Under the pieces are notes generated by a model. That model searched no databases and had not been told where the DNA came from. It saw only the letters and a program-made list of their open reading frames with translations. Both the position numbers and the translations under genes were made by a program. From Paragordius varius (Eukaryota; Animalia; Nematomorpha), in contig OZ176050.1 in assembly GCA_964247055.1 (NCBI GenBank), forward strand, positions 4,526,001 through 4,590,000: a stretch of DNA of 64,000 bases. The letters are read 5' to 3'. Positions 8,999 to 57,542 of the stretch are shown in pieces (the first letter of the stretch is position 1; every line of letters starts with the position of its first letter).

Positions 8999-9038
8999 TT
9001 AAATAAATATAATTGCACTGAATATTTTTAGCTATTAA

Positions 9039-9734: not shown

Positions 9735-12700
9735 ATGTTGTATCGATATCCCAAAATACCTAACATCAGGCAGTTTGAAAATCTGTACAAATCGGTAAAA
9801 AGCATGACTTCTATCTTGCAACAATCTTTGAAGGATTTAAATACCTCTGATATATTATTTAAAAGTAATTTATAATTTAATGTAGAAAATATATTAAATA
9901 GCCTCGTTGACGAGATATCAAGCAAAGCCTTTGATATGAATACCGAAAATAGTCGAATGTTGGAAAATATTATATTATCTTTGGATATAAACTTTTTATC
10001 ACCTTTTTGGACATTTATTGAAGCCAAATTATACGATTTTTTTAAAGATCCACATTGGTCACATATATTACAAACCTTAATTAAAAAAATTGTTCCGTGT
10101 GAAAAGGTTAGTAAATTTTAATTTTACAGAATATCCCACTGTTAACTACTTTAGTAAATTCTATTCAACAAGAATTTTATACACATCCTAATGCCTCTCA
10201 TATTATAATAACATTGTTATCAAAGTTATCTGGCTTAGAAATGGATCATCGCAATATTGAGTACAGTAAATATTCTGCCATGTATAAAAAATCATTTGCG
10301 TTAAAAGAAGTTAATGTTCCTAATACCACTGAAAACATTGTATACAACCAATGCATAAAGCTTTGTTTCCAAATCATTACAGAATTCCTGCAATATGTAT
10401 CTATCAAAGGTGTGTTAGATTTATTTTGGCATAAAAAGTATAACCAATTTAAATTAAATGACATTTTTATTTTGAGGTTCTCCTAACTTTATGTCATTGG
10501 CGAAGTTCACCCGATATGACGTTATAATTAACGAAAGCTTATTACATTAATTTAATAAATTATGAAAATTGATAATTTATTTTTTAAAATTTTAGCAAAT
10601 TTTTGCTGAAGCATAAGAAATATAAGCATGCGGAAAATCACAAAACCACCCTTTTAATTAATACCACTAAAGACGGGTTTTGCATAAAAAAATTTCTTTT
10701 TCAAAATTATTCATGAAAACACAATATGTACATCTTGTTGGCAAATAATTTATTGACGAAATTCTGACGTTAAAGAAATCATCGCGACATTGAATTAGGG
10801 ATTCTTTAATGAAAGTATTAGTAGCATGGTTAAAAATTCATTTTACGCTTTTACAAAAAATTGCCTATATCTAGCATAGTAAAATTCCAAGCCCAATTTC
10901 GGCTTTTTTGGTTCATTTTATAAACAATAACCTATTTGATCGGGCCTCAAAAATATGTTACTAGCGCAGAAAAATCGACCTTATACAAACATTGTTGTTT
11001 CAAACTTAATATTTTATCACGTATATTTGCAAATTCCATTTGATTTCCTAAAACAAATTAATTTAACATTTGTTTGAAATTTGCGTTTGATCACTTCGCT
11101 TAGAAACCATAATCATAAAATCTGATAATTAATTTTTTATATTATAATTTTTTTAATCAAAGGATAATGAGATAGGATTCGACATTTTTTAATAAGACCA
11201 ATTTGGACTAGCAATTTTTATTCGTTTTTCGTTCTATTGAAGTATTTTTTATTCGCTAAAAAACTTTTATCGTAGATATTGAAATATATATATATATATA
11301 TATATTAATGTAACACTCTTGATTTTTCTAATATAGTATTAATCGTATATGTGGATTTATATTGCCAATTAAAACATTTCTTTCGCTATTTTATATGTAG
11401 AATATTACTCCAATCAACATTTGGGAACGATCGTTGAATCATGTATTCTTGTGTGCTATAAATCTTTGTCAAATCCTTTAATAAACGAATCCAATTTATC
11501 CAAATTGATTAAAATACTTAAGCGCATTTTGAAGGATTGGAAGATAAATTTTGTTGAAACCAAAAAAATCACCAAGTATGCGTATTTTCAATAATAATAA
11601 AACATAATAAATGTTCTGTTTATTTTTATTTTGCTCGCATTGCTAAATATAATTGGTTGATATATATATTATTTTAACTAACATCCCCATTATTATAGCC
11701 CCTACAAGTAAAAATTAGATGGAGCTTATTCAGGGCACCATAAGTTGATTTATAAAATAAAATTAAAATGAATGCATTTTTAACAGATTATTGAATTATG
11801 ACTCTATTTTCGGTCATACAAAAATTGAATGATTAAAAATCAATGAGCGTTTTTTAGTTTTTTTATTTTAAAATACCTCGAATTTGAGTCATTAAGCAAT
11901 TATATAATCTATTTTCCAAAATATTTAAACTAACTTTTGGTAGCTACCTACCCTAAAATCTATAAAGTTAATTAAAGACATGCCCAAATTTTTATAATTA
12001 CAATATTGCGCATTTTTATTTGTAGCAATTACTTTATTCAATCATACCTCACTTAATTAAAAAAATATGGTCATAGGAATGATGGGAAAACCATCATCAA
12101 ATATACTTGTAAAGATCCAGATACGGTGTATACAAATACGTATGGTTCACACATCACACAAATTTTGGTTGAAAATTGTGTCGTAAACTTTGATGCAACA
12201 ATGTTAAACAGGAAGAAAGCAAGCATCCGCATAATTGATAAAATGCTCAAAATAATTGCTAAAATGTTTATGGCGGAAAACATAACTGATTTTGTGATCA
12301 ATCCTACGGCTAACTATGTTTTTCAAACTTTTTTGATTAACGTAGCAGTTCAACCCAAACTTATATCCCCAAAGGTAGGTTTATAATTTAGTAATATATA
12401 TATATATAAACATATTATATACACCTCATATTCACATAAAAATTACGTATATTATCGTTTGTGCAAATTATTTCACTATATTACACGTAAATTCATACAT
12501 ATTAGCTCATTTATATTAAAGGCGATTGCTAAAATTTTGTTTTTTTTTTCAACATCTCAGAAATTTAATAATCTTTCACAACAATTGATGAGTGCCTTAA
12601 ACGCCATTTATGATAATGGTAATTTTGGAATTTTGGTTGCATACATACAATGTTGCATACGACGGTGTCATTCCCCACAAAATAAGGATAATAAATCTCT

Positions 12701-15700
12701 CCAACATTTAGAACAATTCTTAATAGTATTAATCTATTTTTTTTGTTAAAAATGAATATTTTGAAATCAAAACCTAATTAGTAAATATATGTTTTTTTGC
12801 GCATATTTTAATATAAATTTTAAACCTTAATTTTTAAAAGAACTAGTGAGTATTTGGTAGGTTACCTATAATTTTAACAATTTTAATCGTATAGGTTATG
12901 TACTAAATTTCTGGATCAAAAATATGGATTTTTTTTATAAAAACTAGTATTTTATAATTCTTTGATATTCTTTGTAAACATCAGCAAGTTAATAATAAAA
13001 TTTATAATGAATTTTTGTTAGATACAAAAATTAACTTTTTTAAATTAAATTAAAATGCTATAAAAATAAAATATTTGTAAAATAAATATATCAATCAATA
13101 TTTAGGCATTAGATGAATTAACAATGTCCAAATGGTGTTGTGATCGTTGCATGAATCCAACTTTTTTCCGCCGATTACTTTATATGAATAATGAGGGCTT
13201 TCGAAACAAACATTTTAAACGTGGATCCAAACTAATAAAAAATAAAAAGTTGAGGATGGAATTAGGACCTTTGAGCGATGATACTCAAGTATTAATTTAT
13301 TATTATATCCATGAATATATTTTTTTGAAAAAATTTTTTGAGATATTTTAGAATTGTTGTAGGCTTACTTTGCATTTTTTTATCAATCATGGTACTCAAC
13401 ATGAATTAAATGCCATTTTAATATTTACTTGGACTGTAATATTCAAAAAAATTCTGGATTATATTAATATACTATTTTTAAAAAATGTATATATATGGAA
13501 TCTTAATTAAAAATGTGATGAGTATTCCAAAGAATTAATGCAGTTTGTGTCGATATTTTTATATGTGTATTTGCCTACTTTTATTTTACGCGACTTTATT
13601 TCTTTAATAATTTCATTTTTTTATTTCATACATTAATACATTAGAATGAACATAAGCCTCATTCTATAACATACCATGGTTCACGTATATTGCAAACTGC
13701 TTTAGATATTGGAAACAACCAAAACGATTCTCTATCAGCTAAGTAAAATTATTATCATTTAAAATATTTAACAGTTGTTGATGGATTCAAAAAGGAATTA
13801 TTTTATAATTCTTAAAAATGGCCCCTAAGTTTATATATACCAATAATTTGTATATTATTTCCATTTAATATTTTTCGTATATAGCCTTTTGCTAAAATTA
13901 TATTCCGTTTTTTATAGCTTTTGACATATTTTTTTTTAAATACTATTTTATAATCATTGGTTATAATATTGATATTATTTTTAGAACTAAGCTTACAGCA
14001 GACAAAACCTCGTTTAATACAACAGTTCAGTTGCGTAGCCTTATCAAAAAACTTATCTGGGATCCGTTTTGTCAGGAATTAGCTTCCGACAAAAATATTG
14101 GTAAAAAACCTTACAATGAACAAATCATATACCAATTATGCACGAGTGACAAAGGAAGCCATATTATAGATATATTATTTAAAACTTTCAACGGTAATAT
14201 AATTTTTGCATTTTTTCGCACAAAATAGCCAAATTAATTGATTTGTTAATTTTAATTTAATTTAGATAATAGCCAATTGCTATCAATGGACGAACAAATA
14301 TCATTTATAGAAAATTATATACAGGTATTTTCCATATTTTATTATTTGGATCATCAATGCATTAAGGTTTGAAACGATGGCTAAATTGGAAATCTGTTTT
14401 TACTTGAAAAATTGGTTCTAGTTTCAATTTTTTTTAATTTTGTTTTCAACACTGTTATGAAATTCAATCATTTTACATTTTATAAAGCTTAAAGCTAGTA
14501 TTTAACCCATTTTTCATCTAATTAATCAAGTCATATATGAAATGACATAATATTGATTAGTTGTCATACTGTTATTCAACTTAAAATATATATTTGTTTA
14601 TTTTATATTTACTATATTTATATAATCAATAATTAGGTATTGAATTTGGTTTATAAAAATACCGTTGTTATTGTCACATAAATATTTTAAAATTATTTAT
14701 TTACTCTTTAGCCCATATTATTACATGTGGCAGTTGATAAATACGGGTCTCGGATATTTGATCACATTTGGGATTTGTATGGAAAAGTTAAACAATCAAA
14801 TCCTTCAACAAATTTGCGTTTACAGCTAATTAATCCTTTGTTACCTCATTTGAGTGCAATGAGAAGTATAAATTATTAAATTACTTTATTTGAAAAATTA
14901 ATGTTAGATATATTCATTCTAAGTACAGGCTTTTATTGCTTTTAATTACTGTGACATTGAAACTTTTTGACCTTGTTTGTATTGCGGGTTAAATACGGGA
15001 AGCACATATTAATTAATCACGAAAACTTATTCTTCTTAAAATTTTATCATATTTATATCGGATAGGACAGTAAATTTTTTAAATCGGTAAAGTTTCCCCA
15101 TCTATTTGCTAATAATTCAAAAACTTTTTTTTTCATTTTTCCAAAGTGTAGACCGGCGAAAGATTTATAACGATTAAACATTTTAGATAATGATATATTT
15201 CAAAAAATATTTTATATAATATGTCTCTAATTTTGTATATATTGTTAAAAATATGCTAAATTTTTTGGCAAAAAAGGTCTTTTAGTTTTACCGTAATCCA
15301 ATGATAATTCATTTTAAGAAATTCGAAAACCTTGTTTTTTTAATGTACTACAAAAAGCAGTTGTGATTACTGTATTAACATAGGTTTGAACACCGTTTAA
15401 ATTTATTACAACGAATTTACAATTTTAGGGTTTATAGTAGTTTTTACAAAAATATATATTATTGTAACCAATTATCAATATATTCTGTAGAGTTAACAAT
15501 AAAATCCTTTATATCAAAATAATTTTGTGTATTATCACGAGTTTATGTCATGAAATTGAATCAACATTGACCAAAGTTTTTAAACAATGAATGTTTTTAC
15601 TAAAATCAACTGTACTGCCATTTATACCATATTTATATTTTTATTTTTTATCAAATTTTATAAACGTAGTAATACAACACAAATTATTTTATCTCATAAC

Positions 15701-16373: not shown

Positions 16374-19300
16374 TCAATATATTACTTTATTGCTATTCCT
16401 TATGTTGGGGTTGGCTGATTTCGATCTACCATTAGCCACCACTGTATGATTTTCTTTATTGATACAATTGATGGAGTTGGATGTTTCGGCATTTAATTTG
16501 TATATATCGAAGGCGGCCTCCTTTATAGCCGTAAAAAATTGGTCCAAAGCTTCAAAAATGTGAGATAACTTTGAATAGCAAAGCGTTTGGTGTTGATCAC
16601 CAATAGGTTTAACATTGACTTGCATATTAAGTCCCAACAATTTACATAAATGGTTCAACTGCAAAAGAAAAGTATGCGAAAGTTTTAATAGTAGAGTAAA
16701 TCCAACTAAGTTTTCTTTTTAAGAAATGTACAAAATTTGATAAAATTTACACTTTTAGGCCATTGATTTATATCGGCTTGTGTCTAATTTTACAACCAAA
16801 AAATATTTTGTTATATTAAAGCGAAAATATCGTATTACCTTTTCGTTTAAAGTTTCATATTGACTCACTACCGAATTGAATTGAGGGTAGGCCTTAATTA
16901 GAAAATTTTTCATGTTTTGTATGAATTTATCTCTTCGGTCTTGAAGCACGGGTTTTAGTGCAAATTGTTTGGTGTGGTAGTCGATTTCCTAAAAAAATAA
17001 TTTTTTTATTTTTAAAAAAAAATGTTTACAATTTGGAATAACAATATAAATTTAAACCTTTTCGATCTCTTTCAAAGAGAGTTTGATTTGACAGATGTCG
17101 GAATTCAAATCGGCTAAACTATTATATAAGATAATTATATATATATTATTATCAAATAAAAAAAATTAATATGCTTTTCACTTTAGTTTTTATTTAAATA
17201 TATTATATGATCTACTTGTGTTTTGCGGCTTGGCGTAAGGATTGGAAATTTTCATCAAATAATTTAGCAACTTTCCTTGGATCATGCATTTCCAGAGGTT
17301 TTTCTTTATTGCCTTCTCCCTTCATTTCGCTTGTGGTCATCAATAGCCCAGGTAAAATTTTATTTAGAATACTGACCACATAATGTAACATGTTTAGCGA
17401 TGGGTTAAGATTGGATTTAACTTCCGTCAATCGGTTTAAGCTTTCCAATGTGAAGGCCCAAATATTTTTGCGATATCCTCGATTCATATAGTTTCCAAGA
17501 GCTAGTATTAATTCCAAAGTTATGCGTAAAAGTCCGTTTGATTTATTAATCATTCCAACACAATTTTTGCTAACACTGAGAGATTGATTTATGTCATGCA
17601 CGGCCTGATTATAATCTATATAATAAAATATAAAATCGATTTTTCACTGAGATGCTAACTGAAGTTAAAACTATCTCTTAATTTTGAGTCGCTTTTAAAC
17701 TATTTTTAATACATTTAATGGTTTACACATATCTGATAAACAAACCGTATATGGTAATTTTTGTTTATAAAATCATTAGATTTTAAATAGCTTATTGCTT
17801 TTAAAAATAATATTTTTTATTGTAACAACAATACCTTTTATGATGAGATCAATATCCTGTATTTTTTCGGCAAATTTTTTTTGAAATACAATATGTTTGA
17901 GTTTTTGTTCATAGCGATATATTTTGGAGGTATGAAGGAAAAATCTATCTGCTAGCCCAATAACGGAATCTTTGCCATGTTGGTTAAGCAGTTGCATTTC
18001 CTCCGTCGTTGGAACATATTTTAATAGCTATAGATAACATATATATAGTTATATATATATATTATTTGTATTATGTTAATTTTTAAACCCATGTTAACAG
18101 AATATTTATACTGATGCCAAGCTCTGTACAGCTACTATCATAAAGGAAAACATAATTTATTGTAGATTATAGTGACCAGATAGGCTGTTTTTCGCAGTAC
18201 AGTACTGGGTTTTCAGAAAAAAACTGCGCCTGTACTGCGCCCACTTTTGTACTGCATTTTGAAATAAAAAAATTAATCTTTAAATATACATTATTTACCT
18301 TTTATTTATTCAAAAAAAATATTTTAGAATTTAATATAATACCCTCTGTAAAAATAACCTCATAATTTGTAAAGAAATGCATTTTGAGGTACAAAACTAA
18401 TATTGGCCTATTTTTAGTTGGTTAATAAATAATTATCTGCTTGAATTATACATAAAACATATGATTACAGCCTTTTGCGCAGTAACTATAAATCTCGGAC
18501 TCTGCACCGTAAGATTCAGGCTAATGGCTCTTTCACTTAGGGCTTCGTTTAAAATTAACAAAATAATTTATGATATTTTTATATTTGTTTGATAGTTTAG
18601 AGAGTTTATCTTTTGTTATAATTATTAAACGGAAAATCATATAGAAAAAATTAAAATTTATTATATATGGCAGATGATTTCGAAATAATCTGTTTTCGTA
18701 AAAAATAAAGAGTACGATATCCATATTCATTAGGTGGGAGGTTTCTTAATTTTTTTCCTAAACATTAATTTTTATTTTTTTATACAGTTTTTAGAGTCTA
18801 TTTTTTCCTTTTTAAAAGGGGAAGGACTAAAATTGTATCCGGACTTGTGAAGGCTTTAACACTTGACAGCCCAGGGCTGACAGTGATGATGGAAAAATTT
18901 CGCAGTTTCGAGGTTCGAACTCTGTCATACAGTGTAAGAGTCCGGCGCCCTACCTACTATACCATCACGCCTCTAAACATTAATTTATATTAGTTATCTT
19001 ATTTTTAGCATAAATAAATTTAAGATATTTTGTTGAAGCGTACTTCAAACTGTTTTGAAGCATGATGGAAACTGTATAACGCTTTGAGATATAATAAAAT
19101 TCTTTTTCCAAATACGATGATGTTGTACATTCAGAGTTAAATGTTTGCTTGCAAATTTTGGTGCATTTTTGTGAAAAAACATTTCTATTTAACATAATTT
19201 TGAAAATGAACGATTATTTTAATCAAAATCCGAGTGAGAAATTAGCATCATCGAATTATATATATATATATAACATCTCGACCGTTTATATCGTTTCCAT

Positions 19301-22300
19301 CATGCTCAAAATAGTATGAAAGGGAATTTTACGTTTATTTTAAGAGAACGGTTCATTTTAAAAGAGCCAAAAAATTTGGGACTTTTAGAGCCACTTCTAA
19401 AAATTTAAAATTTTTAAAATATTGTTTTGCTTTTTATATGGAGTTTATGTTATATTTTAGTGATATTTTTTAAAATTAAACATTTAGCATTCACCAAAAC
19501 ATATATTTGAAAAAATGCGCCTTTATTGCAATATATACAGAGCACTTACTGTAAATAACTTTCTTTAATAACTCGTAAAGGTTTAAACCAAAAGCACCAT
19601 GATAATCCTGATAATATCCTATCAGAATATATATATTTCATCAGGATATTTTTTGTGGAATATTCCACGATGGTGTAAAAACAAGGCAAAGTATGTTTTA
19701 ATTTTGTACTGCGTTCAAGTTAAAAATATCTGGTCACATTATTGTAGATCAACTTTTAAATAAAAATATGTATTACTTGTTCACACATGTCTTTGTCAAG
19801 ATTATTTCCAGTATCCATATCTAAAACATCCAAAGCTATTTGCTCTGGACTTCTTTTAAATTTGGACAAAAGTATGGTGCAATTTTGGGCACGCCTTGCA
19901 TCAATAATTGATCCACAATTCCCACTTCCATGCAAATTTGCATTGTTATTATGACAAGAATGTGTTTGTGGAAACTTGCTATGATTTTGAGAGTCTTCTA
20001 TATCATTCTATCCATAAATATAATAATTGTAAATGGTAAAAATTTGGATTGGTAACTTATCGGTATTATGATACTTTTTGGCGAAAAACATTATAAGAAA
20101 TCTTTGGGCTAATAAATTCCCCGATTTCAGAATGGTTAAAAGGGAGGGGACACCAGATTTAATACTACAAACAGAAGAAATGTAAAAAATAGTTTTATTT
20201 TCATTAAAAATATAGTATGACAAGCGTTTATCTCGCACTAAAAAACTTCGCGCGGATAAATTGACTGTATGTGTGTGATATACCTGGTGAGTTGGTGATT
20301 TTTGGTATGCAGAGAAGAGGGTCTCGAATTCCTCCAAATCGATTAATTGATATATCTACCAATAATAGGTTATAATTATTATAGTATGTGATATATTAAA
20401 TTAAAATAATTGAAACTCCTTTATTATATAAATTATTTGATCGTTTTATAGATGCTTTCTCAGTGACTGTTACTTTAAAATAACCAGTTTAATTATATTG
20501 AACATATGGGTTATCTATGGCAGGTAGCTCTTTATGCTGTAAAAAGGTACCTCTTAAAAATTTATGCAAAAATATTATTTGTATTGCTGGCCATTAATTC
20601 CGCCATATTATGGAAAATCTTATAGTCATATAATTAAAATAATGTATTATTTGATCACCCAATTACTAAAATATTTTCAAAATCTTATAATTATTCAATT
20701 AGTTAAAATTTTTTTATTTAAGGGTTTGTTATTTTGCATCTATTGACTGGTTAGGATCTTAAATAATCTTTGCGCTTTCAAATTTCATTGATAATCACTG
20801 GCCTGAGACGCTCTAACATTTTTCATATTAAGGCATGTTTAAATTTCGTACACATATTAATAACCACTTTATATAAATATACATTGCTAATTTTTGACTT
20901 TAAAATATAATTTCTTACAGTCTTTGGTTATTGATATTGAAGGGAGAAAATATTTTATATTTTAAATTATACAGAACAAAATTATTATATAAAATCAGAT
21001 TAAATATTGTTAATTTATATTGTATCTTCTCACGTGGTAAAAATATGGTTTAATTTAAGGTTATTGTTATAATCAGGTACACAGTCATAAAAAATTCAAA
21101 ATGATTCAACTCTGTTTATAGCCATATCTCATCATTAGCTTTATTAGTAGAAATATTACTCGATTTTCATTAAAGCTCTTCCAAATCGATGTATCAAAAT
21201 TTTGGCTACGCTCCAAAATATCCCAATTAAAGGCTTTCAATGGTATAGAAGGGTTTATAATAGATTTCATAGTTTTGTTGAACATAGAGCCTGTATAATT
21301 CCATATAAATGAAACAAATATTTTTGCAGCATAAATTGATAAGGAAATAAGTGTATTGCAATCGATTAGGAAAAGCAACCGACTTATTAATAATTGTTGT
21401 TTAATCTATTGCAATTAAAGATTTATAGGGAATTATTTTTAATTAAATAAAATGTCTTTAATAGCAGCAAAAACTAAATTACATATGAAAAGGTAATTTT
21501 AAAAAAATAGAGTTATTAACTTTTTATCTAAACACCAGATTCTCAGTCTTAAAGATCTACATTATCTTTTTGCCCGGATACCAAAATATGGAAAAGGGGC
21601 TTTTTATTATCATATATTTAAGTTAAACTCAATGAAGCTCCCATATTTGTAAAAAATTTTGACTAAAAAGAGTTGCTCTATTTGACGATGGTTATAGCGA
21701 AAAAAATTGAGCGCAAACATCTAATTTATAATTATTTTACAATACTTATATAGTTACAATTACATTTCATTCAATGTACTTGGATAAATAGAATTTTTAT
21801 CAAATTTTGAAATTATGTATGCAGGGCTAAAATTGTCGAATCAAAAACTAAAAATCAATTGCGAAAAATTGTTATCATATTGACAAACATGATTAGCTTT
21901 CAATTTGCCAAACCCTAAAAACGTTTAGTATTTATTCGGTGTTAATTTTATTACAAATATCAATAAATATGCAACTCCACGCTTATTGATTTATATTTAT
22001 AAAATAATCAGCTGCTTAGCCTATTTTTGTTTGCATTATGGCCTTTATTATTTTTTCACATTTTTAAGAATCAGATAGACATGTCTCTCCAAAGCTACAA
22101 ACTGGACTTCAAAATTTTATACATTATGAATAATCTTACAATTTATTTACCTGGTAATGGTGGAGCATTGGGAGCTTGGGGTTTTGCTATTCCTTTTTTT
22201 GCCTGTATTTGTTCTCCAGACTCGGTTGGTTTAGTTGTTATTGTTGAGGTTATGTGATTGCCATTTAAGTGAGATCCAACTGTTGTTTTTTGTTGGCACA

Positions 22301-39780: not shown

Positions 39781-40047
39781 TTAATATATTTATACTAAAA
39801 CTCAGTTTAGGGAGGAAAACTGCCCTTTAAAATGTTTAAAATATTGCACCATCATACATAAAAAAGTAAAATCGATAAAACAATTTTTTTATATATTTCT
39901 TTAGTAAAAATGATAGTTGACATAATTGAGGTCATTTTATATCACTATTGCAATTATCGGATTATAAATATATAATGAGTGCAAAAATACATTTTCTGCC
40001 TAACAGGTATTTACAGGTGTGTCAAGAAGTAATCATCATATGTAAAA

Positions 40048-42355: not shown

Positions 42356-44675
42356 CATGGCTTCTTAAACTATAAGTCGCGACCCCGTTTGGGTCGCCTA
42401 GCAAAATTTTGGGGTCGCGAGTGATAAAAATACAATTTAACAAGAAATGTTTTTTAACTTGTAAAATTATTGTCGTAAAGAAAAATATCAATCATCGTTG
42501 ATAAATATATCACAAAATCTTCGGTTCGGAAAGACTGTTTATACCAGCACTTCTATTCCGAACATAGCTATGTTATTCGGTTGTTTTAATTAAGGTTGAC
42601 GAAAAGATTGTCTCTGGGAACGTCTTTTGTAAAATAATAATTATATTAGTGGTGTGCTGATGCATCTAGTGTTGTAATTTGTCAGTGGCCCTGTAATAAG
42701 ATTTTAGTTTTCTTTTATTTATTCGGTAATTAATACAAATATAATCTGCAATATCTTATTTTTATATATTCATCGTATTTTAGGATAAAAATAATTTTTG
42801 CCCATAGATAAATGGCTGAACTTAAATATGAATGGTAATGACGCAAATGATAATCCAACAAACTCTTCTCAGACAGGACAAAGTATTGGGAAAGAGACAT
42901 CTAATGTGCGAAAAGAAAATATGATAAGTCTTTTCTGTTTCGTATGTCAATAAACCTAAAGAATATTTTGAAAGACTGTTTATATCTTTGAATAAAGAAA
43001 AGACAAACATCGAAAAATTTATAACCGTTAACGAAAATTATTTACTAGCATCATATGAAGTTTCATACTATATTGCTAAAAATAAAAGGCCATTCACCAT
43101 TGGCGAAGATCTTGTGTTACCTGCTGATATTAAAATGGTAGAAATACTTTATGGAAGAAAATATGGCGATGATATTCGAAAATTTCCTTTTTCGAACGAC
43201 ACCGACTCGACTAGAATTTCTGATATTAACAAGGATATTAATACAACTTATGACAAAAATTAAAGCCCAAAATTTTCGCTTCAGTTGGACGAAACAACTG
43301 ATTAACAAATTGGCTTGGTGTGGAATAAGCACAGATTGTGCAAGAGCGATGACGGGCAAAAATGTTATTTTTAAATCATTTTTTCAACCTGCTCATTATG
43401 ATCATATAACTTTTACGCATTACCTTATTCAAGAGAGTCTTGCAGCTAAAAAATTAGCGCCAGAATTGAACGTGCTTTAAGAGCCATCCCCTTACCAGTC
43501 GCTTATTTTCAAATCTCTGTAAGGATACGGATTCCAACTACACAACTTTGTTATTACATGCAGAAGTAAGATGGTTGTCAAGAGATCAAAGTTTAAAAAA
43601 ATTATTGTTATTAAAAAACGAGATTGAAATATTTTTTACTAAACGAAAATGTGAATTTGCTGCTTTTTTTTCAAAATGACTTGTGGCTATTCAAGCTGTG
43701 TTATTTGTCAGATATTTTTGCGAAGTTAAACGATCTTAACTTGTCTCTTCAAGGAAAACATTGCGATATATTTACTTCAAACAATAAAATTAAATTTATT
43801 CAAAAGATCAGCATTTGGAAAAGTAGCGTGGAAAAAATTCGTTCGAAATTTTTTCCAGTGTCAACAATTTTGTAATTGAGAAAATTCATTGTAAAAAATT
43901 TTATTGCTAAGACTATTGTAGATCACTTAAAAGCGCTAGAAATACAGTTCCGGACATAATTGATTTAAAAAAATAGTTTGGACCGTTTTGAATTGGCTTA
44001 AGTGAGATTGATTATCTGCCACTTAAAGCTCAAGAGGAATTTGCTGATATTTTGTGTGACTCAAACTTAAAACTATAATTCCAACAAAAGCCCTTGACTG
44101 AATTCTTGATCGGAAATAGAACTGAATTTTCCACAATCGCCGGTATGGCGTTAAATGTACTTCTGCCATTCAACACCACATATATATGTGAAGTTACTTT
44201 CTCAGCTTTAACACACATTAAATCCCAATATCGTTCAGCGAGAAAAAATGTTGAAGGGGTCTTACGTCCAGCAGTTTCAAACATTACACCCAGATTTGAT
44301 TTGTTATGCATTAAAAAACATGCACCTCCATCTCATTAAATTTTTAACGTAATCTTTTATTTGATATTTACCACCCAACTACTTGGATATATTCGAGAGA
44401 AGTGAAACGGTGAGAATCTACTTTTATTTTTGAAACCATAATAAAAACATTTCTATAACATTTTGTAAATTTCAAATTAAATTTTTATATATTTCAAAAC
44501 GAAATTTAAAATTTATATATTTTTATATGCATAAGTATATTGTTACATAATAAATATATCATTAAAAAATATTAATTTAAATATTAATTTATTTTTCTTT
44601 TATATTTGTTGGGGTAGTTAAAGAAACTCGCAATTATAAATGGGGTCGGGAATTACAAAAGTTTAAGAAGCCCTG
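42356..44675 (+). mobile_element. Decayed autonomous hAT transposon (ZBED5/ZBED8/SCAND3-like Buster/Charlie transposase)
   Basis: TIRs CATGGCTTCTTAAACT / AGTTTAAGAAGCCCTG; remnants ASYEVSYYIAKNKRPFTIGEDLVLPA, LCYLSDIFAKLNDLNLSLQG and LLPFNTTYICEVTFSAL; multiple frameshifts. Confidence 0.92.
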
Positions 44676-45341: not shown

Positions 45342-47365
45342 CTAGCTGGCCCTGTCACCCTTCGCTGTGACGCAGTTTCACCGATAATTATTCTTAATAA
45401 TAGAGGTAATGGGAAAATAATAAAAAACATATTTATTAAAAGAATGTCTATAATTATTCTTTTACGGGTTATTGCATAGGAAATATTGTTTACGGGAAAT
45501 TGACCATATATAAACTGTCCCTTATTAAAGATTCAACTATCATTGGATTTAATTTAAGATTTTCGTTTAACGAATAAAAGTTTTATTATAAAATAGTGTT
45601 CACACAGCTGGGATCAAGGGATATAAAAAGTAAATTATTTGTGGTCCTTTTTTAAAAGAAAGAATGATATTATACAATTCCCCAAAAATGTGTTTAACTG
45701 ACCTCGTATGGTTTCCTAAGTTTTCTGAAAATAGCTCCAAAACCACGCCATTTTTATATGGCGTCTCAGTTTTAACCGGTAGACCCCTACCCATAGACCT
45801 ATATGGAAAAAGCGCTGAGTTAAATTCTTTCCCTTTATAGGGCAAATATTTTGAATAATTTTTGATCTCATCGTCGCATGGGTTATTCGAAAAAATACAT
45901 CAACACTTAATAATCGTTATGATGGCGCATTTTAAGGGTATAAAGGCCCCAGATAAACGGCTAATAAAAAAACTTCTGACCTTTTTTACCTAGTTACCGG
46001 TAATATTTCAAGCTTTTAATGTAATATGGCTTCATAGATTTTCTGTAAATTAGCTTCAAAACAACGCAATTTCTATATAGTGGCGCAGTTTTTGGCGGGT
46101 AGCTCCTAAAGGGGCTACTATAAAAAAAGCGTTGGGCAAAATTTTTGTCTTTATATGGGGAATATCTGGAATTATCCTGAATTCCATATGATCCTATTAG
46201 ACTCATAGTTGTTCTGAAATTCGGCTCCAAAGGCCTGCTGTATCGATGTGTTGACACCAGGGGTAAAACAAAAAAACTCTCGATTAAAATTTTTGGCTTA
46301 ATTCGGGTAATACATGGAATCATGATTGATTCTATATGCTCTCTTTTTTCGAAAAATTGCCTCAAAAAGTCATTCTATGGTGGCGCATTTTTCAGGGAAG
46401 GGCCTAATTAAGGAATAATTTAAAAAACCGCTCGACTTAAAATTTTTTGCCTTTGGTAATATTTCAGGCCTTTATTAAACTTATATGGCCTGATAAGTTT
46501 TCTGAAAATTAACTCCTAAACAACGCAATTTCGATATGGTGACGCAGTTTTAGGCGGATAGCTCCCTACCCAGAGATTGATACAAAAAAGCGCTTGATTA
46601 AAATTTTTTCCTTTTATGGAGAATACCTGGAATCATGATTGATTCCATATGCTCTCATTAGCTTTTGAAATTGCCTCAAAATAAAAAATCATTCTATAAT
46701 GGCGCATTTCTCAGGGTGTGAAGGGCGTAATAACGCCTAATTTTAAAAAACCGCACGATCTAAATTTTTGTTTTGTTACGCGTAATATTTTAAGCACTTA
46801 ATGAACTCATATGGCATGATAGGTTTTCTAAATCCCAAAGGCACGCTATTTCGATATAATGGGGCAGTTTTTAGCTGGTATCTAGCAGCCAATATAAAAA
46901 AACGCAGGGCTAAAATTCTTGCCTTATACCAAGGGAATATGTGTAATCCTGATTTAATTTTTACGGTCTCATACCCTGAGTGAAAAATAGATTCAAAATA
47001 TTTTTGTGGACTTATTTTTTTTAAAAAAATGGCTTACAGGGGTAGCGGGTAAAAAACGGGCTAAATTAAAAAAGCGAGCCGACTATGTTCGGCGCAATTG
47101 AAAAAAAAGTAAAAAAATCATTGAAATCGAATGGTCCACACGTTTTAGGAAAAATTGTCTCAAAGACACGATTTTTAGGGACTTGTGATTTTAAAAAAAC
47201 CCGTTTATTACACGGGGTGGCCCGAACTGGAGCTTTAATTCAAAAAAAGGCGAAGCTATTGTCGGGGAATTTAATAATGATTATATTTTTTCTTTGGATT
47301 TAAATGGGTCTACCGATTTTCCGGAAACAGATCACAAAGCCAGCACATATTAATAAATATATAGA
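45342..47365 (-). mobile_element. Non-autonomous Helitron with tandem internal units
   Basis: Minus strand: A^TC 5' end at 47365 and CTAG^T 3' end at 45342, preceded by a GC hairpin (CTGTCAC...GTGACGCAG on +). Repeated units begin TGGCGCATTT at ~45922, ~46381 and ~46700. Confidence 0.78.
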
Positions 47366-47646
47366 TGAATAAAGAATATTCATTATTAAAACTAAACAAA
47401 ATTCTATAAGAAAAATTAAAGCCGAATCACATTTATTTAGTGAAATTAAATATGTCAATATTTAAATCGATTGTAAATAAGTTATTATAAAAACTATATT
47501 TCGTGGATCACAAAATTTAACATAATTATTGCAAAAATATCGCAGTTCAAGTTCGAATGGGAATTTCGTTGTGCGCGGAGTTGAATCGGTTTAAATTTGA
47601 GCGGGAAATGCAATTTTTAATAAATATTTTTATATTTCTCCTTTTT

Positions 47647-50420
47647 TCATTCATCGACACCTTCCTCAATTAAGCCTTCTTTAATTGGCTTATCCATTAT
47701 CTTAAATAATTTTCTCCAGGCTATTTCAGTGTCATTCGTAAACAAATCACCGCATGCTTGCTTCAAAGACTTTATGATAACATCCCATAATTCCTATATA
47801 TATATATATATATCACTGTGTGCAAAAAAGAGGATCATTTTGATTTAACATAAATTTTTTTCATGAGATAGCTTATGACCAGCGTATTCATTTGCCGCGA
47901 AAATTTTAGTTTGTGACAACCTAGTTATTGAAATATTTGGAGAAAATCGAAATCGGACAAAAAGTGAAAATTAAGATAATTATTGATTCAAATAATGATA
48001 AAAGTTGAGATATTATGTTTGATTATCATTTTAGACGATATTTTTAATATATAGATAGCCTAAAATCATAAAGTTAGAGTTTCTATAATATCTCAGCTCA
48101 AAAGATGGCGTTTCTTTTTTAAGACACAGTCAAATTTTTAGTTACTAGCTAAACTCACTATTAAATTTTAACATTAATATTTTATTTAGAAAAAAATTTT
48201 ATATATCAAAATAAAACTAAAAAATATTGTTTTTTATTTTTTCATTTTTTTTGTCATCTGGTTTATGAGTGTATTAGAACTTTATACTGTTTTATTTTGG
48301 AATCTTACATGAGTGGGAGTTATAGTATATCATTTATGTAAAATAGGATTTAAAAGTAGGGGAATATTAACCAACAATCCGTACAAATCCCAACAGGTTT
48401 GTTTTAACACAAATTAATATTTTTACTGGGATATGTACGGATTGGTTGATATTCCACTACTTTTAAATCCCATTTTGCATAAATTATATACTTTATTAAT
48501 CCCACTCATGTGAGATTCCAAAATAAAACAGTATAAATTTTTAATACATTCATAAACCAAATGACAAAAAAATGAAAAAAATAAAAAAAATATTTTTTAG
48601 TTTTATTTTGATATAGAAATTTTGTTTTCTAAATAAAATATTAATGTTAAAATTTAATAGTGAGTTTAGCTAGTAAATAATTAAAAAAATTATTTTAAAA
48701 TAGTTTCATAAAAATAAATTTGACTTTTGTGTGTCTTAAAAAAGAAAGGCCATCTTTTGAGCTGAGATATTATAGAAACTCTAACTATATGATTTTAGGC
48801 TATCTATAAATTAAAAATATCGTCTAAAATGATAATCAAACATAATATCTCATCTTTTATCATTATTTCTTGAATCATCCATAATTATCTTAATTTTCAC
48901 TTTTTGTCCGATTTCGATTTTATCTCAATATTTCAAAAACTAGGTCGTAAACAAATAAAAAATTTTACAGCAAATGAATTTACTGGTCATACGCTTTCTT
49001 TGCACACAGTGTATATTAAACAAATAATTTCTATCACCTTGAATTATAAAAAATGGAAAAATAAGAAATATACTGTATATTGATGAAATGAGACACCAAA
49101 ATGTGCATGCTGACGGCCATTTTGTAATAACAATTCTTCAAGGCATTCGGGATCCTCAAAATTTTGGATAAAAGAATTGATGGCATTAATAACCTATTGA
49201 ATGGCTTTTATAAATACTTTGTCAAATTATATTTGATTGGTTCTATAATCATAAAAAACCGATTTATAAATATTGATTGCATTCAAAGAACGGATATTTG
49301 AAATTTTTTTAGTAATTTCAAAACAATATAAAATTAATACATGTTGATTGCGATACTCAAAATATATAATTTTATCCTAAAATTTCAAATTTAATGTTCC
49401 AACTTATTAAGTTCTGGTTTGATTAAAAACTTGTCCGAATAAATAGTCATGTTAAAAATTAAATGGTTTAATTTAACCTAAGGAACAGCCATTTTAAAAA
49501 TTGACCCGAATTATAACATAACACTTAGTAAATAAGATCCAAACTAGAAAAACAGCGTGAACTAAATATTTAAACATGATGTGTACCACTGTCAAATAAA
49601 ATATATATCTTTTTTAATCCGTTAGCCAGGATATATATTTATTAGCAAATGTTGAAAAAAATCTTCCTGATTTTACAAAAAAATTCTTCTAATTTAAATT
49701 ATGAGCTTAACTACTATTGTTTTATAGATTTTTTAACTAAAAGAAAAGTTAAAATTATAGTTAGCGGGAAAAAGTTTTAGATGATGATTTTTATATTTCT
49801 ATTTTTAAAAATATTAATTATAGAATGTAGAAACAAACATTTTTGATAGTTTATTGTGTTTTAAGTAATAAACTTCATTTCTCAAAAATAAAGGGTTGGA
49901 ATTTAAACAAAATAAAGAAAGGTTGTATTAGAATAGACAATCAGTAAATGAGCCGAAATTCAATAAATAAAAAAAATAAATCTTTAAAAAAAATCTGATT
50001 TTTTTTATCAATATTGAAATGTTAATAATTATATACAGCAGTGGCATGAGCTTTGTATTGTCGTGAATTTGGTAAATCTTCTAAGGATATCCGTTCAAAT
50101 TTTTTGAATAAGTTTTTGTATTCTGGGTGTGCCGCAAAATAACTAAATTATGAAATGAAAAGTGGATATTAGTTCTTTAAGATACATTTCATAAATTTAT
50201 TATGCTTAGAGGTTCGCTCTAAATTTCATAATTTAGCTCTATGGCTACTTTGAAACAAATTTTTTTAATTTTAAAAACCACCTTAATTGATTATATGATA
50301 TTAAATATATTATTACTTGTTAAACACGAGAATTCCAGCACTCTTAGGGTCTTTCATAACTGGCGCCCAAGTTTTATTAATTTCTTCTATATCTTTTGGA
50401 GTTAAGGCTTCATTTGCCAT
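47647..50420 (-). CDS. Single-domain globin, 158 aa, neuroglobin-type intron pattern; exons 50420-50317, 50142-50037, 49193-49074, 47793-47647
   Basis: MANEALTPKDIEEINKTWAPVMKDPKSAGILVFNNYFAAHPEYKNLFKKF...QYKAHATAVINAINSFIQNFEDPECLEELLLQNGRQHAHFGVSFHQYTELWDVIIKSLKQACGDLFTNDTEIAWRKLF...VDE*. Trp A12, Pro C2, Phe CD1, His E7 and His F8 are present; introns fall at B12.2, E11.0 and G7.0. Confidence 0.95.
47814..49011. mobile_element. 1.2-kb foldback element with CACTG...CAGTG termini and 3-bp TAT TSD (CMC/CACTA-Chapaev-like)
   Basis: Two ~575-bp arms are near-perfect reverse complements around a ~40-bp loop (~48390-48430); TAT on both flanks; fills globin intron 3. Confidence 0.85.
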
Positions 50421-52511: not shown

Positions 52512-55500
52512 TTAAAGCAAAGTGTGTCCTGTCATATCAGCGGGTTTTTCAATTCCCATCAAATCTAAAACAGTGGGTGCAACATCACACAAAGCCGGGA
52601 GCTTTTTAACATCACTATCATGACTGAAATCTTGGCGTTCATGAGTCAAATTTTTGGCATCAAATTTTCGCGGACCAGTCATATAAAATGGAACTATTAC
52701 AAAGTAATATAATATTTACAAATAATTAACCATATCCATCCTTTCAATATTTGTTTTATAGTTTGAAAAAACCAATTTTTGATAAGAAAATTTTTAAATA
52801 ATAATATTTCAAATATAATTAACTGCTTATAGTATTGTCATATGAATTTAAAAAATAGACAAACATAATATGATAATCTGAAAAATGTGTTGCTTGTTGT
52901 TGACATTTTAATCATTAAATATTAATTAGTGTCATTATTTTTTTCATTTCATCTTATTTATATTTAGACATTTAGTTATAATACTCCACCTATATATTCG
53001 AATTAAGTTATATACCTGGATTACAGGTGTGTTGGGTAAAAGGACCACCCGATTTACTTAACATTTCTTCCGCATTCCCGTGATCGGCTGTCACCAATAA
53101 GGTGTAACCATTTTCATCACAAGCCTTTTCTACCATACCAATGGCTTTATCTACACAAATATTTTACATTTTATGAGAAAAGCATTCGTAATATTTTTTT
53201 CCTTAAACAAAAAAATTGTTTTAAAGTTTATTATATTTTTTAAATTATGATCTATATAGGGCCATACTTTGCAATAAGTTAAAAAATGCTTTGAGAAAAC
53301 TGTAATTTTTATTAGCCCCAAGCAATAAGTTTAATAATGTATTGATTATTTTCTATTTAAAGTAACGCGGATATTAATAATATAATAGCGTGTGAAACAA
53401 ATATAATTTACCTGAACACCAAAATTAACAAATAACAATGATTTCTATAGCCCAATTAATAAATAAGGCGTTAAACAAAAATATGAAATCAAAGATATTT
53501 AAAAAAACACGTGAAATTATATGAATTAATACCTGTGGCTTCACACGCAATAACGGCAGCATCATAGACCCCAGTGTGGCCAACCATATCTGGTGGGGCA
53601 AAATTGCACATAACAAAAGGGTACTTTTTGCTTTTGATCGCTTCACACATCTTATAAGAAATTTTTTTAAAAAATAATAAAAATATATAATTCTATTGTT
53701 TTGGAAAATCCAAACAATGATCATACAAAAAGCATCGATAGCATATATACCCACGTTATATGAACAAAGTGAAAATCACTTTTTTATTTAAATATAATGG
53801 TGTGATATATCGTTATATAGATTGGGTTTGATAAGGATGAAAATATCAGTCTATTTTTTGAATATATTTCATGTGGCATAGAATAAAATAGCATTAAACT
53901 TTATCTTAATGTAAAAAAGTTGGTTAATTAATAAATAACTTTAATATTTTTAATCCTTAATAATGTTATTAACATTATAGAAAGCAAATTTTATGAGTCA
54001 ATTGCGTTTTATTTAGGTGCAATAAATATTGGTAAAACGCTTAACTCAGTTATGCCTAAAATGATAACTCTGTATTTATAAGCCGTCACACCAGTTATTA
54101 TACTTATTGACGGATGAAAAATCTAACCTTACTATTCAAGTTTTATATCACAATATCAGATTATCAATAAATTCCCTTTATTCCTTACTATTGTAATGTA
54201 ATTAACAAATTATATGAGTATAGAATAAAATAAGTAAATTTTTTGTTTCAAAATTATTACAGCTTCGGCAACACCCATACAACTCATTTCGGGCTGTTTG
54301 TCATACGTGGGCACTTTGGGTGAAGGGATCATTTTACGATCCTCGTGAGGGAATTGATCCTCCCTTCCGCCATTAAAGAAAAACGTGACATGTGCATATT
54401 TTTCAGTTTCTATCACAAAAATCATAAAAGTAATGTTGTCATTTTAATTTCAAGTGCAAAATTAGCTTAAAATATTTAATATATCGAACTATAAATTAAA
54501 TAATAGATTCTAAAGCTAACGTAAAATATTTAAAATATATAAATAAATTTATTAAAATTAATAATGTACCAGCGCAATGAAATTGATTCTTGTTTTTAAC
54601 GCTTAACCATTCTGCCAACACATTTTTATTAAAGACGGGGGGAAACAGTACAGGTAACTTAAATTCCTTCTTGTATTCAGTCATACAATAAACTCCCTAT
54701 GATTTAATTTGTAGTGGTATTAAGCACAAAATTTGACAATATTTAGTAAAAAAAAAGAATAATCGATTAAAATAAAGATTTTGTCAAAAATAATCTATGG
54801 GTAAAGAAAAAAGATGGGGTATCAAACAAAATTAAACTCTACCATTTGCACTTCAAGAGTACCCTTGAACACTTCAAGTTGGTCCTTAAACATTTCAAGT
54901 TGGTCCTTAAACACTTCAAATTGGTCCTTGAACATTTCAATTGGTTCTTAAAATTTTTCGTTTTAAACAAAATTTTTGGATTTATTTTTTTATTTTATTA
55001 TTTTTTAACCTAATTTTCTATATTTATTAACTAGTTTTTTGTTTCAAACTATTTTTTTCCAATTTAACAAAATTATTAACTTTTAAATGTTTCCAATGAA
55101 AAATTGTGTATACAAGAAAAATTATATATTTTTATTATGTGTTATAATTTTATAAATATCCAAAATAATTTTAAGAAAGTAATAAAGATATTCGGTTTCT
55201 AAATGATTAAAAGTTGATATTAATTTATGTTAAATAATAGAAAATAGGTTAAAAACGATAAAATATATGAATGATATATGATTGATTGATAAAAGTTAAA
55301 AATAAATTAAAAAAGTCAAAGGACCAATTTAAAATGTTCAAGGTCACTCTTGAAGTGCAAATGGTATATATAAATTTTTAAATGTTTAAATACCTCCTTA
55401 AAGTCATTTTCATTAAAAAACAATGCGATAAAAATTAAAAACTAACCAATTTTTGCGGGATAACTTCAGTTGAAAATTGAGGTTTAAGTCCCAAACATTC

Positions 55501-57542
55501 CACAATTTCTCGCATACGATCGGCTCGGTAGTTGAAAAACATAACGGTATCATTATCTATAATTATATCACATAAACATAAATTTCAGGTAAAAAATAAC
55601 GGTTAATTAAAATATACCGGTAATTCGATTATTTCCAGATTTATCTTCAATAATTAGCGGCTGCAAAAACTCGTCCGTTTGTTTCTTATCACCCTCTTGA
55701 TTGTACAGAGATTCCATTTTCTAGGTTTAAAAAACCATATAATTTAAAAGCCAAATTAAAACATTTTTTAACGCTAAATGCTATTTTATAAAAAAAAGCA
55801 ATATATTACGCATTTTTAATAATTAGTCTAATTTATACGTTTTTAAGATTTTTACATATATATATATATATATATAAACCAGGCATATTTTTTCAGGTAT
55901 GTTTCATATATGATTGTCAGAGTTCAATTAAAACATTATCCTTATATTTACTAAAAAATTATATAAATTGTCCATATTTTGTTCAAAAAAATAAAAAAAA
56001 TTAAAAGAAACGCTATAAACAAATAAATATTTTTACCGAAAGAACATCCTTGAATTCAATTTTTGTCCCCTTGCCTTGTGTAAAAGCTTCATAAGCTATC
56101 TTAACACGTTCCCAACGCTTATCACGATCCATTGCAAAATAACGACCAACGATAGTTGCTAAATGACCATATTTTAGCTTTTGGCTCATGTAATCATCCA
56201 ATTGTCCAATATATTTCACTAAAATAGGTATATAGTTAAAAGATAATTAATTTATATGAATAAGAAAAGCGCTTAATTTTTCATATAAAATATAGAGTTT
56301 TTTGTCAAATTTGATAACAATTAAGCTATTATTATTAATCGTCACTATTCTATCGACTTTAATAACCAGATCCTTATTTAACTTTATACAAACGAGTAAA
56401 TCAACGATTAGTATCCATAATAACTTTACATCAAAATAATTGGACCTAATATATAAAAAGGACAAATAAATTAATATTTTTAAATATTATATGATAATGA
56501 AAGATTTTGTCAATATTTAACAGTTTTATGAAATGGATAATTAAAATGCCACCACATGAGTTGGTTTAATAAAATATAATATGCATATCATAGAAAACTT
56601 TATTCTATATAAAACAATAGTGGGATCATAAAATTACCAATTTATTATCAGTATTATTATGTTGACATATTTGTTATTTATTAATTATAACTATAAAGAA
56701 TTTAACCGTCGGTCCGGTTATTATATTTTAAAGTTCAAAAACTCAACTCTAATCTTTCTAAATATAATTTCTTGTTTAATTTCCAGGAATTCTTAGGTTA
56801 TGCAGCAGCTTTTCAATAAGATGACTAGAGAAAAATAACGGAAAAAAGTAATTTACCAGCACTTGTGGGGAGTGTATCTCGACCATCTGTTATAGCATGA
56901 ACATAGGTGTGGGGCACTCCATGCTTTTTGGCCCCTTCCAAAAGGGCATACAAGTGATCTATGTGAGAATGGACTCCACCATCACTAACCTAGATATTTA
57001 ATATATTTTAAATTTAAATATAAAATGTAAAGCTGTAAACAAAGTAAAATTTACACTTGGCTAATAATTGAAATATTAGAATAGTTTACAAGGGTATGCA
57101 ATGATGTTAAGTCTTAAATAAAATATAATATATAAAATCTCAATACATACCAATCCAATAAAATGTAGTTTTCCAGTACCATTTTTGGCACGGTCACAAA
57201 GTTCCACAAATTTTTCAATGTTAAACAAACTTTTATCTTCAATAGACATATTGATACGGACAATGTCCTGTAAAATATATAAAAAATTTACTTGATAAAT
57301 GACTCTACCAGCACCAATATTTAGATGTCCAACTTCACTATTACCCATTAAGCCTTTCGGTAGACCAACAGCTAAACCATGAGCGCAAAGTTTGAGAGCT
57401 TGTCCTTCTCTCTGACTTAATTTATCCATTACTGGTGTATTTGCATTTGCAATTGCATTACCTACTAATTAATATAAAGCAAACCTTCTTTTTTATCCAA
57501 CAAACCCCATCCATCGATAACTATCAAGCAAACGTTGGCCAT
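52512..57542 (-). CDS. gpmI: 2,3-bisphosphoglycerate-independent phosphoglycerate mutase (iPGM), 527 aa, 12 exons
   Basis: Exons 57542-57485, 57461-57292, 57267-57151, 56989-56857, 56218-56037, 55720-55618, 55556-55447, 54696-54570, 54409-54261, 53650-53533, 53150-53016, 52693-52512 total 1584 nt in one frame. Motifs [70 protein letters not shown] and [11 protein letters not shown] are present. Confidence 0.98.
54840..55366. mobile_element. Foldback MITE family C in iPGM intron 7
   Basis: TACCATTTGCACTTCAAGAGT / ACTCTTGAAGTGCAAATGGTA; 21-bp TTGAACACTTCAAGTTGGTCC-type units. Confidence 0.8.

Follow-up and report, generated by a model that had tools for sequence, protein, structure and literature searches.

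The window analysed here, 64,000 nt of the genome of the hairworm Paragordius varius, was rebuilt as six stop-free gene models with GT-AG introns: FAU, a NOP9-like gene, a formin, a clarin-like gene, a globin, and iPGM (Table 1). [quoted passage not shown] The iPGM coding sequence is 1584 nt long and stop-free, with every intron GT-AG and with Pfam matches to Metalloenzyme and iPGM_N. The NOP9 coding sequence (2160 or 2121 nt) is also stop-free and carries PUF_NOP9 matches that are weak but ordered in four exons, while the formin model (3780 nt, stop-free, introns all GT-AG) contains FH2 matches. Homology support is slight for NOP9 and for the formin N-terminus.

Pfam searches returned no matches in the intervals 2-8, 15-16, 30-39, 42-47, and 58-63 kb, which therefore added no further genes to the sample. 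By eye and by self-BLAST, the same intervals hold repeats and, alongside a degraded hAT-like transposase, other copies of transposable elements. Repeats are abundant in this genome and also occur inside long introns, including a SINE-like copy in a formin intron (29627-30167) and an inverted repeat in globin intron 3.

The databases searched contained no protein of the same species, and a search of sequencing runs returned no RNA run containing this stretch. A protein search for hairworm orthologues with the 353-aa formin exon as query gave no match, nor did exact look-ups of one reading frame from the window and of P0002. The search of representative proteins returned solely distant formins, with 29-56% identity in FH2, and in the iPGM word search the best matches were from other taxa at 56-73% identity, with none above 73%.

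Table 1. Gene models, tiny introns, and other short introns in the window
Feature	Positions	Strand	Description
FAU gene	1486-2021	+	3 exons; introns 22, 127 nt
FAU intron 1	1567-1588	+	22 nt, phase 0, 81 coding nt from ATG
NOP9-like gene	9735-14879	+	12 coding exons; introns 21, 23, 991, 501, 147 (or 186), 380, 63, 158, 242, 72, 387 nt
NOP9 intron 1	9865-9885	+	21 nt, phase 1, 130 coding nt from ATG
NOP9 intron 2	10107-10129	+	23 nt, phase 0, 351 coding nt from ATG
NOP9 intron 7	13289-13351	+	63 nt
NOP9, further short internal intron	14194-14265		72 nt
Formin gene	16374-30583	-	at least 17 exons, provisional 5′ end; introns 1195, 1890, 1411, 79, 537, 448, 537, 79, 860, 804, 276, 1749, 219, 97, 69, 180 nt
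Formin intron	16989-17057	-	69 nt
Formin, further short internal intron	24510-24588		79 nt
Clarin-like gene	40048-41484	+	3 exons; introns 25, 521 nt
Clarin-like intron 1	40289-40313	+	25 nt, phase 1, 241 coding nt from ATG
Globin gene	47647-50420	-	4 exons; introns 174, 843, 1280 nt
iPGM gene	52512-57542	-	12 coding exons; introns 23, 24, 161, 638, 316, 61, 750, 160, 610, 382, 322 nt
iPGM intron 6	55557-55617	-	61 nt; the window's shortest internal intron
iPGM intron 2	57268-57291	-	24 nt, phase 0, in frame, stop-free, 228 coding nt from ATG
iPGM intron 1	57462-57484	-	23 nt, phase 1, 58 coding nt from ATG
Candidate first intron, 63-kb gene	63321-63360	+	40 nt, GT-AG; gene runs off window
Second candidate intron, 63-kb gene	63721-63756	+	36 nt

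Each of the six introns of 21-25 nt is either required for a stop-free coding sequence or matched by an exact gap in homologues. In iPGM, removal of intron 1 restores the conserved N-terminus common to all homologues (...CLIVIDGWG...E joined to GNAI), and intron 2 corresponds to an exact 8-residue gap relative to C. elegans iPGM (5kgn) and most of the 17 aligned homologues. Two homologues, P0157 and P0183, are genomic reading frames in which an intron of their own is read through at this same site. Removal of FAU intron 1 leaves a stop-free coding sequence of 129 aa, in which exon 2 matches the C-terminal half of the ubiquitin fold and exon 3 gives a full-length match to Ribosomal_S30 (E=2e-29). 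NOP9 intron 1 contains an in-frame stop, carries TTAAT 5 nt before its AG, and links a 58-codon to a 77-codon open frame; NOP9 exon 1 gave no homology match in profile searches and rests on the 58-codon frame. NOP9 intron 2 links 77 and 118 open codons, and its flanking exons match positions 9-60 and 91-150 of the PUF_NOP9 profile, in order. The clarin-like intron 1 links 85 and 74 open codons to give a stop-free coding sequence of 297 aa. Residue 13 of its exon 2 aligns with position 92 of the Clarin-2 profile, so that exon 2 begins at about profile position 80, and exon 1 encodes 80 residues. From these reading frames and alignments we infer that the 21-25-nt stretches are spliced out of RNA.

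A gene-finder script with no length prior recovered all six tiny introns and set none in real internal exons, and a scan for any GT-AG segment of 18-45 nt between open frames found the same six and no credible internal one. Several other candidates were rejected. The segments at 21291-21315, 22673-22698, and 52694-52719, considered as internal tiny introns, each represent the 3′ end of a long intron that follows a chance open frame, and the segment at 13487-13522 is read in the same way, on parsimony only. A 19-nt "intron" called by the script at 18844-18862 falls within a tRNA-like repeat that the script took for an exon; the FH2 homology passes straight from 19765 to 18021. The script also called an extra iPGM exon (54843-54926), across which homologues align without added residues. 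The preliminary description gave introns of 36-37 nt for the gene at 63 kb; the two candidates located there, of 40 and 36 nt, were left out of all counts because this gene, for which no homologue was found, runs off the window; if real, these introns of 36-40 nt would blur the size gap described below.

The tiny introns (21, 22, 23, 23, 24, and 25 nt) are in all six cases either coding intron 1 or coding intron 2 and lie 58-351 coding nt downstream of the ATG, as had been claimed in the preliminary description, which placed six such introns within about 400 nt of the start codon. Five are located in the part of the window that it covered (two in NOP9, two in iPGM, and one in the clarin-like gene); the sixth, in FAU, lies outside that part. 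The remaining 39 introns of the six models range from 61 to 1890 nt. The five shortest internal introns listed earlier were reproduced exactly, and the statement that no internal intron is shorter than 60 nt also stands, with none of the 39 non-tiny introns below 61 nt. At ordinal positions 1-2, 6 of 12 introns are tiny, compared with 0 of 33 at later positions (p=1.1e-4 in the Fisher test that the preliminary description had proposed, run here on the 45 introns of the window). Without formin the Fisher test gives p=4.4e-4, and permutation within genes gives p=8.3e-5. No verified intron measures 26-60 nt (0/45), and in this small sample there are two separate short-length modes, one at 21-25 nt (n=6) and one at 61-79 nt (n=6; 61, 63, 69, 72, 79, and 79 nt). 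The earlier suggestion of two minimal-intron regimes fits these data, in which the two size groups are split by position. First introns are the longest in most animals; here the reverse is found.

Seven introns lie within 351 coding nt of the ATG yet are not tiny: globin 174, 843, and 1280 nt, FAU 127 nt, iPGM 161 nt, and, given the provisional start, formin 1195 and 1890 nt. Nearness to the start is thus not sufficient for tininess, since intron 1 of globin, a gene with no tiny intron, is found 104 coding nt from the ATG and the 127-nt FAU intron at +202. Nor is a strict first-intron cap effect enough, because the tiny introns include two second introns along with four first introns, as counted on coding introns (5′ UTR introns are invisible in these models).

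The tiny introns have a compressed architecture of their own, in which GT is followed by A or T and a putative branch A lies about 15 nt from the 5′ end. A branch-point-like yTnAy motif is present upstream of the AG as TTAAT in five of the six tiny introns, where 0.8 would be expected from random intron segments (P=3e-4). The putative branch A of this motif lies 13-16 nt in from the 5′ end and precedes the AG by 5-12 nt; motifs of this kind in longer introns mostly lie 16-35 nt upstream of the AG. The 5′ splice site is GTT in 3/6 tiny introns versus 2/23 of the other introns outside formin.

Both iPGM tiny introns have counterparts in other eukaryotes. An intron of the same place and phase as intron 1 measures about 176 nt in one locus (L001) and about 510 nt in another (L004), and the intron at the site of intron 2 in L001 measures 69 nt. 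Given introns of 69-510 nt at the same sites, the iPGM tiny introns are old introns that have shrunk. On this comparison of two iPGM introns, the tiny introns are shrunken ancestral introns rather than new ones.

The restriction of tiny introns to gene starts has been published in a milder form for a parasitic flatworm and is unreported for hairworms in the literature searched. In Gyrodactylus salaris, short introns have modes of about 32 and 58 bp, the shorter mode dominating intron positions 1-2 and the longer mode prevailing from position 3 (Hahn et al. 2014, PMC4040987). The window resembles G. salaris in having two short modes with the shorter enriched at positions 1-2. It differs in that the flatworm bias is a shift in proportions, whereas in the window the short class is below 30 nt and the distribution is all-or-none, and in that the host is an ecdysozoan rather than a flatworm. 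A survey of 51 animal genomes found introns below 30 bp only in myxobolid Myxozoa and Dicyema japonicum, where almost every intron is tiny and the median length is 22-27 bp (Hadjez et al. 2026, PMC13644364). These two animal groups are the only ones for which introns of less than 30 nt have been published. The shared features are GT-AG introns of about 20-27 nt, reduced splice-site motifs, a few As just upstream of the AG that are interpreted as the branch site, and a parasitic animal lineage. In contrast to the myxobolids and Dicyema, short introns are not the bulk of all introns in the window; the 6 tiny introns of 45 are confined to gene starts and are found beside repeat-filled kilobase introns.

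Tapeworm peak-1 and peak-2 short introns were reportedly described by Tsai et al. in 2013. In the analysis of Wang et al. (2016, PMC5036155), the tapeworm short classes measure about 36 and 73 bp and differ in their preferred positions along genes. The polarity in Taenia is opposite to that in the window, the shortest class preferring the 3′ end and the second class the middle of the gene (PMC5036155). The cap need therefore not be the source of patterns of size by position. For tapeworms, jumps from one intron length class to another have been interpreted as a sign of different splicing modes (PMC6157073).

From the anatomy of the sequence, the positions, the size groups, and the ancestral intron positions, we infer a cap-proximal mechanism. 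The explanation that we tentatively prefer, with slightly less than even confidence, is that there are two intron classes and that the splicing machinery tolerates introns of less than 30 nt only near the 5′ end of the transcript, with help from the cap-binding complex. Under this explanation, the ultra-short GT-AG class of 21-25 nt would be limited to the first one or two intron positions, no more than about 350 coding nt from the start codon, and later introns would be subject to an ordinary floor of about 60 nt. [quoted passage not shown] With such aid, 5′ introns could therefore drift to a second, lower size minimum, which downstream introns could not reach. A more specific version, which we regard as unlikely, holds that a distinct cap- or promoter-proximal mode of the spliceosome accepts about 15 nt from 5′ splice site to branch point within the first few hundred nt only, so that position would set intron size. 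We know of no indication that the cap-binding complex lowers minimum intron length. Its involvement would be compatible with published work. The complex is described as enhancing the splicing of cap-proximal introns (Izaurralde 1994 and Lewis 1996, as cited in PMC4889658) and helps U1 at the 5′ splice site nearest the cap; in Drosophila this effect seems to extend over about 250 nt, and first introns have weaker 5′ splice sites (PMC4889658). The frequent GTT sites of the tiny introns recall this different treatment of first introns. Only four genes carry tiny introns, a small sample that counts against the preferred explanation.

A somewhat unlikely alternative is that introns of about 22 nt could be spliced anywhere and that the polarity is historical, only the 5′-proximal introns having shrunk so far. 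Stronger pressure toward deletion, or selection for compact sequence close to promoters, could be responsible, or a start-proximal intron could have been kept for expression but trimmed, and abundant transposable elements would have kept downstream introns long or re-expanded them. The repeat copies in long introns of this repeat-rich genome are in agreement with such a history, as are the ancestry of the tiny introns and the globin intron and FAU intron 2, which show that an intron close to the ATG need not be small. However, internal introns shrink as well but stop at 61-79 nt (six cases), never entering the range of 26-60 nt, which looks like a position-dependent hard floor. The first intron of formin, if the provisional start holds, has taken up a repeat, so closeness to a gene start gives an intron no protection from insertion, and the fixed geometry of the tiny class, whose putative branch A lies near position 15, suggests an optimum under constraint and not decay without limit.

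Quality control offers another account, in our view decidedly unlikely: tiny introns may be spliced unreliably and tolerated only where their retention creates a premature stop upstream of later junctions, leading to nonsense-mediated decay. For Paramecium, an argument along these lines has been put forward. Retention would shift the frame or add a stop in five of the six tiny introns, and at least one further intron lies downstream of each of the six. The former count is nevertheless at chance level, since length alone breaks the frame in two thirds of cases and stops are common in AT-rich sequence, and iPGM intron 2 is both in frame and stop-free. Quality control would also allow any position but the last, yet of about 28 non-last introns at position 3 or later none is tiny. 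That the pattern reflects chance or reader bias is very unlikely. Tiny introns are easier to notice near conserved N-termini, and the sample is small, with four genes affected, models built by hand, and little homology at NOP9 and the formin N-terminus; against this, the scan and the script arrived at the same six introns, and the permutation result is difficult to reconcile with chance. It is hardly credible that the stretches are not spliceosomal but are assembly errors, somatically removed DNA segments, or translational bypass sites. All six have GT-AG ends, five have a branch-like motif at a fixed distance, and two coincide exactly with intron positions and phases of other eukaryotes.

In this window the place in the gene predicts intron size almost perfectly, with tiny introns beside kilobase introns, and the genome thus offers a natural setting in which to test what determines minimum intron length and whether splicing follows other rules at the 5′ end of a transcript. 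Standard gene finders and read aligners are expected to reject introns this short. If they do, many hairworm genes would have wrongly annotated first exons, and this could contribute to low BUSCO completeness, reported as 71.6% for a hairworm genome.

Six genes in the window could be modelled, and a seventh begins near 63.2 kb and continues beyond the window edge (Table). Exon boundaries were set by sequence motif, joined frames were verified by script, and databases were searched exon by exon; the six models are without stops and have GT-AG at every intron. Sorted by length, their 45 introns begin with two short groups, the first of 21-25 nt and the second running from 61, 63, 69, 72, 79, 79 and 97 nt upward, and the range of 26-60 nt is empty in the six gene models. 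The preliminary description had stated that tiny introns (21-25 nt) occur only as first or second coding introns, and this observation holds for the window: all six do so, at coding positions 58, 81, 130, 228, 241 and 351. The five introns it had listed as the shortest internal ones were likewise reproduced to the base.

Coordinates of gene models, repeats and compared introns (window positions, except for L001, a eukaryotic metagenome scaffold)
Feature	Position	Strand	Introns or character	Basis
FAU	1486-2021	+	22, 127 nt	
NOP9-like	9735-14879	+	21, 23, 991, 501, 147 (or 186), 380, 63, 158, 242, 72, 387 nt	
Clarin-like	40048-41484	+	25, 521 nt	
Globin	50420-47647	-	174, 843, 1280 nt	
iPGM (cofactor-independent phosphoglycerate mutase)	57542-52512	-	23, 24, 161, 638, 316, 61, 750, 160, 610, 382, 322 nt	
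Formin	~30583-16374	-	1195, 1890, 1411, 79, 537, 448, 537, 79, 860, 804, 276, 1749, 219, 97, 69, 180 nt	
SINE-like repeat	8.4-9.6, 29.6-30.2, 39.2-39.8, 57.9-63.2 kb		~590 bp, at least 11 copies	self-comparison
SINE-like copies	8440-9005, 9035-9625, 29627-30167, 39210-39788, 57931-58412, 58742-59323, 60141-60958, 60944-61270, 62037-62312, 62295-62881, 62876-63176			
Second repeat element	4788-6006 and 45699-47372		two copies, ~79-80% identical, ~32% GC (GC-richer)	self-comparison
hAT-like transposase	42800-44340	+	degraded, several frame shifts	sequence reading only
L001 introns	579-754, 919-987, 1107-1335		~176, 69, ~229 nt	

Tiny introns account for 6 of the 12 introns at positions 1-2 and for none of the 33 later ones (Fisher p=1.1e-4; p=4.4e-4 with formin excluded, whose introns of 1195 and 1890 nt are only provisionally assigned to positions 1-2 because a homologue search with its N-terminal half gave nothing alignable). 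With the number of tiny introns per gene held fixed, they would occupy precisely the leading slots by chance with a probability of 8.3e-5. A place near the start permits a tiny intron but does not ensure one. Ordinary introns also lie there, namely the first globin intron (174 nt, at +104), the second FAU intron (127 nt, at +202) and the third iPGM intron (161 nt, at +345).

The best case among the predicted tiny introns is iPGM intron 2, which is 24 nt long, in frame and stop-free. It corresponds to an exact 8-residue gap in a conserved motif in C. elegans iPGM (5kgn) and most of 17 aligned homologues; instead of the gap, two genomic reading frames among the homologues (P0157 and P0183) contain their own intron, read through at this site. 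With iPGM intron 1 (23 nt) taken out, the N-terminus regains its universal form, ...CLIVIDGWG...E|GNAI. The FAU intron (22 nt) links two halves of the ubiquitin-like domain, with a full-length S30 exon downstream. The clarin-like intron (25 nt) links open frames of 85 and 74 codons; exon 1 comprises 80 residues, and exon 2 begins near position 80 of the Clarin-2 profile. NOP9 intron 2 (23 nt) is flanked by PUF_NOP9 matches on both sides, in order, while the sole support for NOP9 intron 1 (21 nt) is an ATG-containing open frame of 58 codons, the estimated chance of which is ~0.5% in the base composition of the window. A scan of all 18-45-nt GT-AG segments joining open frames recovered all six, as did a gene-finder script using codon log-odds and splice-site matrices with no intron length prior, a consistency check rather than independent proof since the script was trained on the same models. 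Neither method placed credible tiny introns deeper in genes within the window.

The joined iPGM model was compared with two further loci. Three introns of L001 match the codon and phase of iPGM introns 1, 2 and 3, and a eukaryotic contig (L004) has a ~510-nt intron at position 1; the nematode-like frame P0183 runs into an intron at position 2. Both tiny iPGM introns thus occupy old intron positions. Since the sites are common to other eukaryotes, the tiny introns are shrunken ancestral introns, not insertions.

The tiny class also has a characteristic anatomy. TTAAT occurs in five of the six, whereas segments drawn at random from long introns would give 0.8 (P=3e-4). Counted from the 5′ end, the putative branch A is at position 13-16, which leaves 5-12 nt to the AG; in longer introns the distance from a similar motif to the AG is mostly 16-35 nt. 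A GTT rather than GTA start is found in 3 of 6 tiny introns versus 2 of 23 others (formin excluded), which is a trend only.

The proposal of two minimal-intron regimes is supported by these data. The strongest case for a minimum intron length that is itself position-dependent comes from the two size floors, which lie at different positions in the gene models of the window. A purely historical origin, in which deletion near promoters was combined with repeat-driven growth downstream, is possible, but it does not account for the halt in the shrinkage of internal introns at ~60 nt. Under a decay-based explanation, the lack of tiny introns at the many middle positions would not be expected. As to how two regimes could arise, the cap-binding complex aids U1 binding at the cap-proximal 5′ site, and in Drosophila first introns have weaker 5′ sites and the cap effect apparently fades past ~250 nt (PMC4889658). 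Help from this complex for the predicted tiny introns, as suggested in the preliminary description, would be compatible with that work. Because two of the six are second introns, a wider “early transcript” effect, which would enable tiny-intron removal, fits better than a strict first-intron effect.

The 5′ pattern does not form a new category; a layout published for a flatworm is seen here in sharper form, with introns below 30 nt. The Schistosoma mansoni genome paper reportedly describes small 5′ introns. Introns of Gyrodactylus salaris show two length modes, ~32 and ~58 bp, the shorter dominating positions 1-2 and the longer position 3 onward (PMC4040987). Taenia has length classes of ~36 and 73 bp that, like those of the window, differ in position, but there the shortest class favours the 3′ end (PMC5036155). 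In a thousand-genome survey, discrete intron length classes were proposed to be the outcome of different modes of splicing (PMC6157073). The only published cases of introns below 30 bp are those of Dicyema and the myxobolid myxozoans, in which such introns form the bulk (PMC13644364). Our literature search found no paper on hairworm introns and no report of the 5′ layout for this phylum.

On the minus strand at 30786-30804, a 19-nt GT-AG candidate (GTAATTTTTAATATTTTAG) immediately precedes an open frame of 30 codons, which joins the first accepted formin exon in frame. This candidate may represent a tiny intron at the 5′ end of formin; a start codon was looked for upstream and not found.

The window is AT-rich animal DNA (GC ~25%), rich in repeats, which fits the published values for Gordionus montsenyensis (26.9% GC, 64% repeats). 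Self-comparison revealed three repeat kinds. The SINE-like copies, 74-90% identical to one another, occupy most of 57.9-63.2 kb and lie directly upstream of NOP9, the clarin-like gene and iPGM; no SINEs were reported in the Gordionus genome paper. Pfam searches gave no match for the hAT-like transposase frames or for open frames outside the modelled genes. A tRNA-like sequence (…GGTAGGGCGCCGGACTCTTACAC…GTTCGAACCTCG) at ~18860-18990, minus strand, within the 1749-nt formin intron, may be the head of a tRNA-derived repeat; ARAGORN called no tRNA there, and gene-finder exons at this site were rejected as false. A short tandem unit, reading GEFELFK in one frame, forms an inverted pair (28092-28223 and 28355-28485) inside a formin intron, with a related copy at 6256-6529. 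Globin intron 3 contains an inverted repeat (47866-48128 versus 48730-48999, 90% identity). In iPGM intron 7 (54843-54950, minus strand), a tandem ~21-nt unit (…TTCAAGGACCAA(T/C)TTGAAGTG…) keeps its frame open, and the exon placed there by the gene-finder was a mistaken call.
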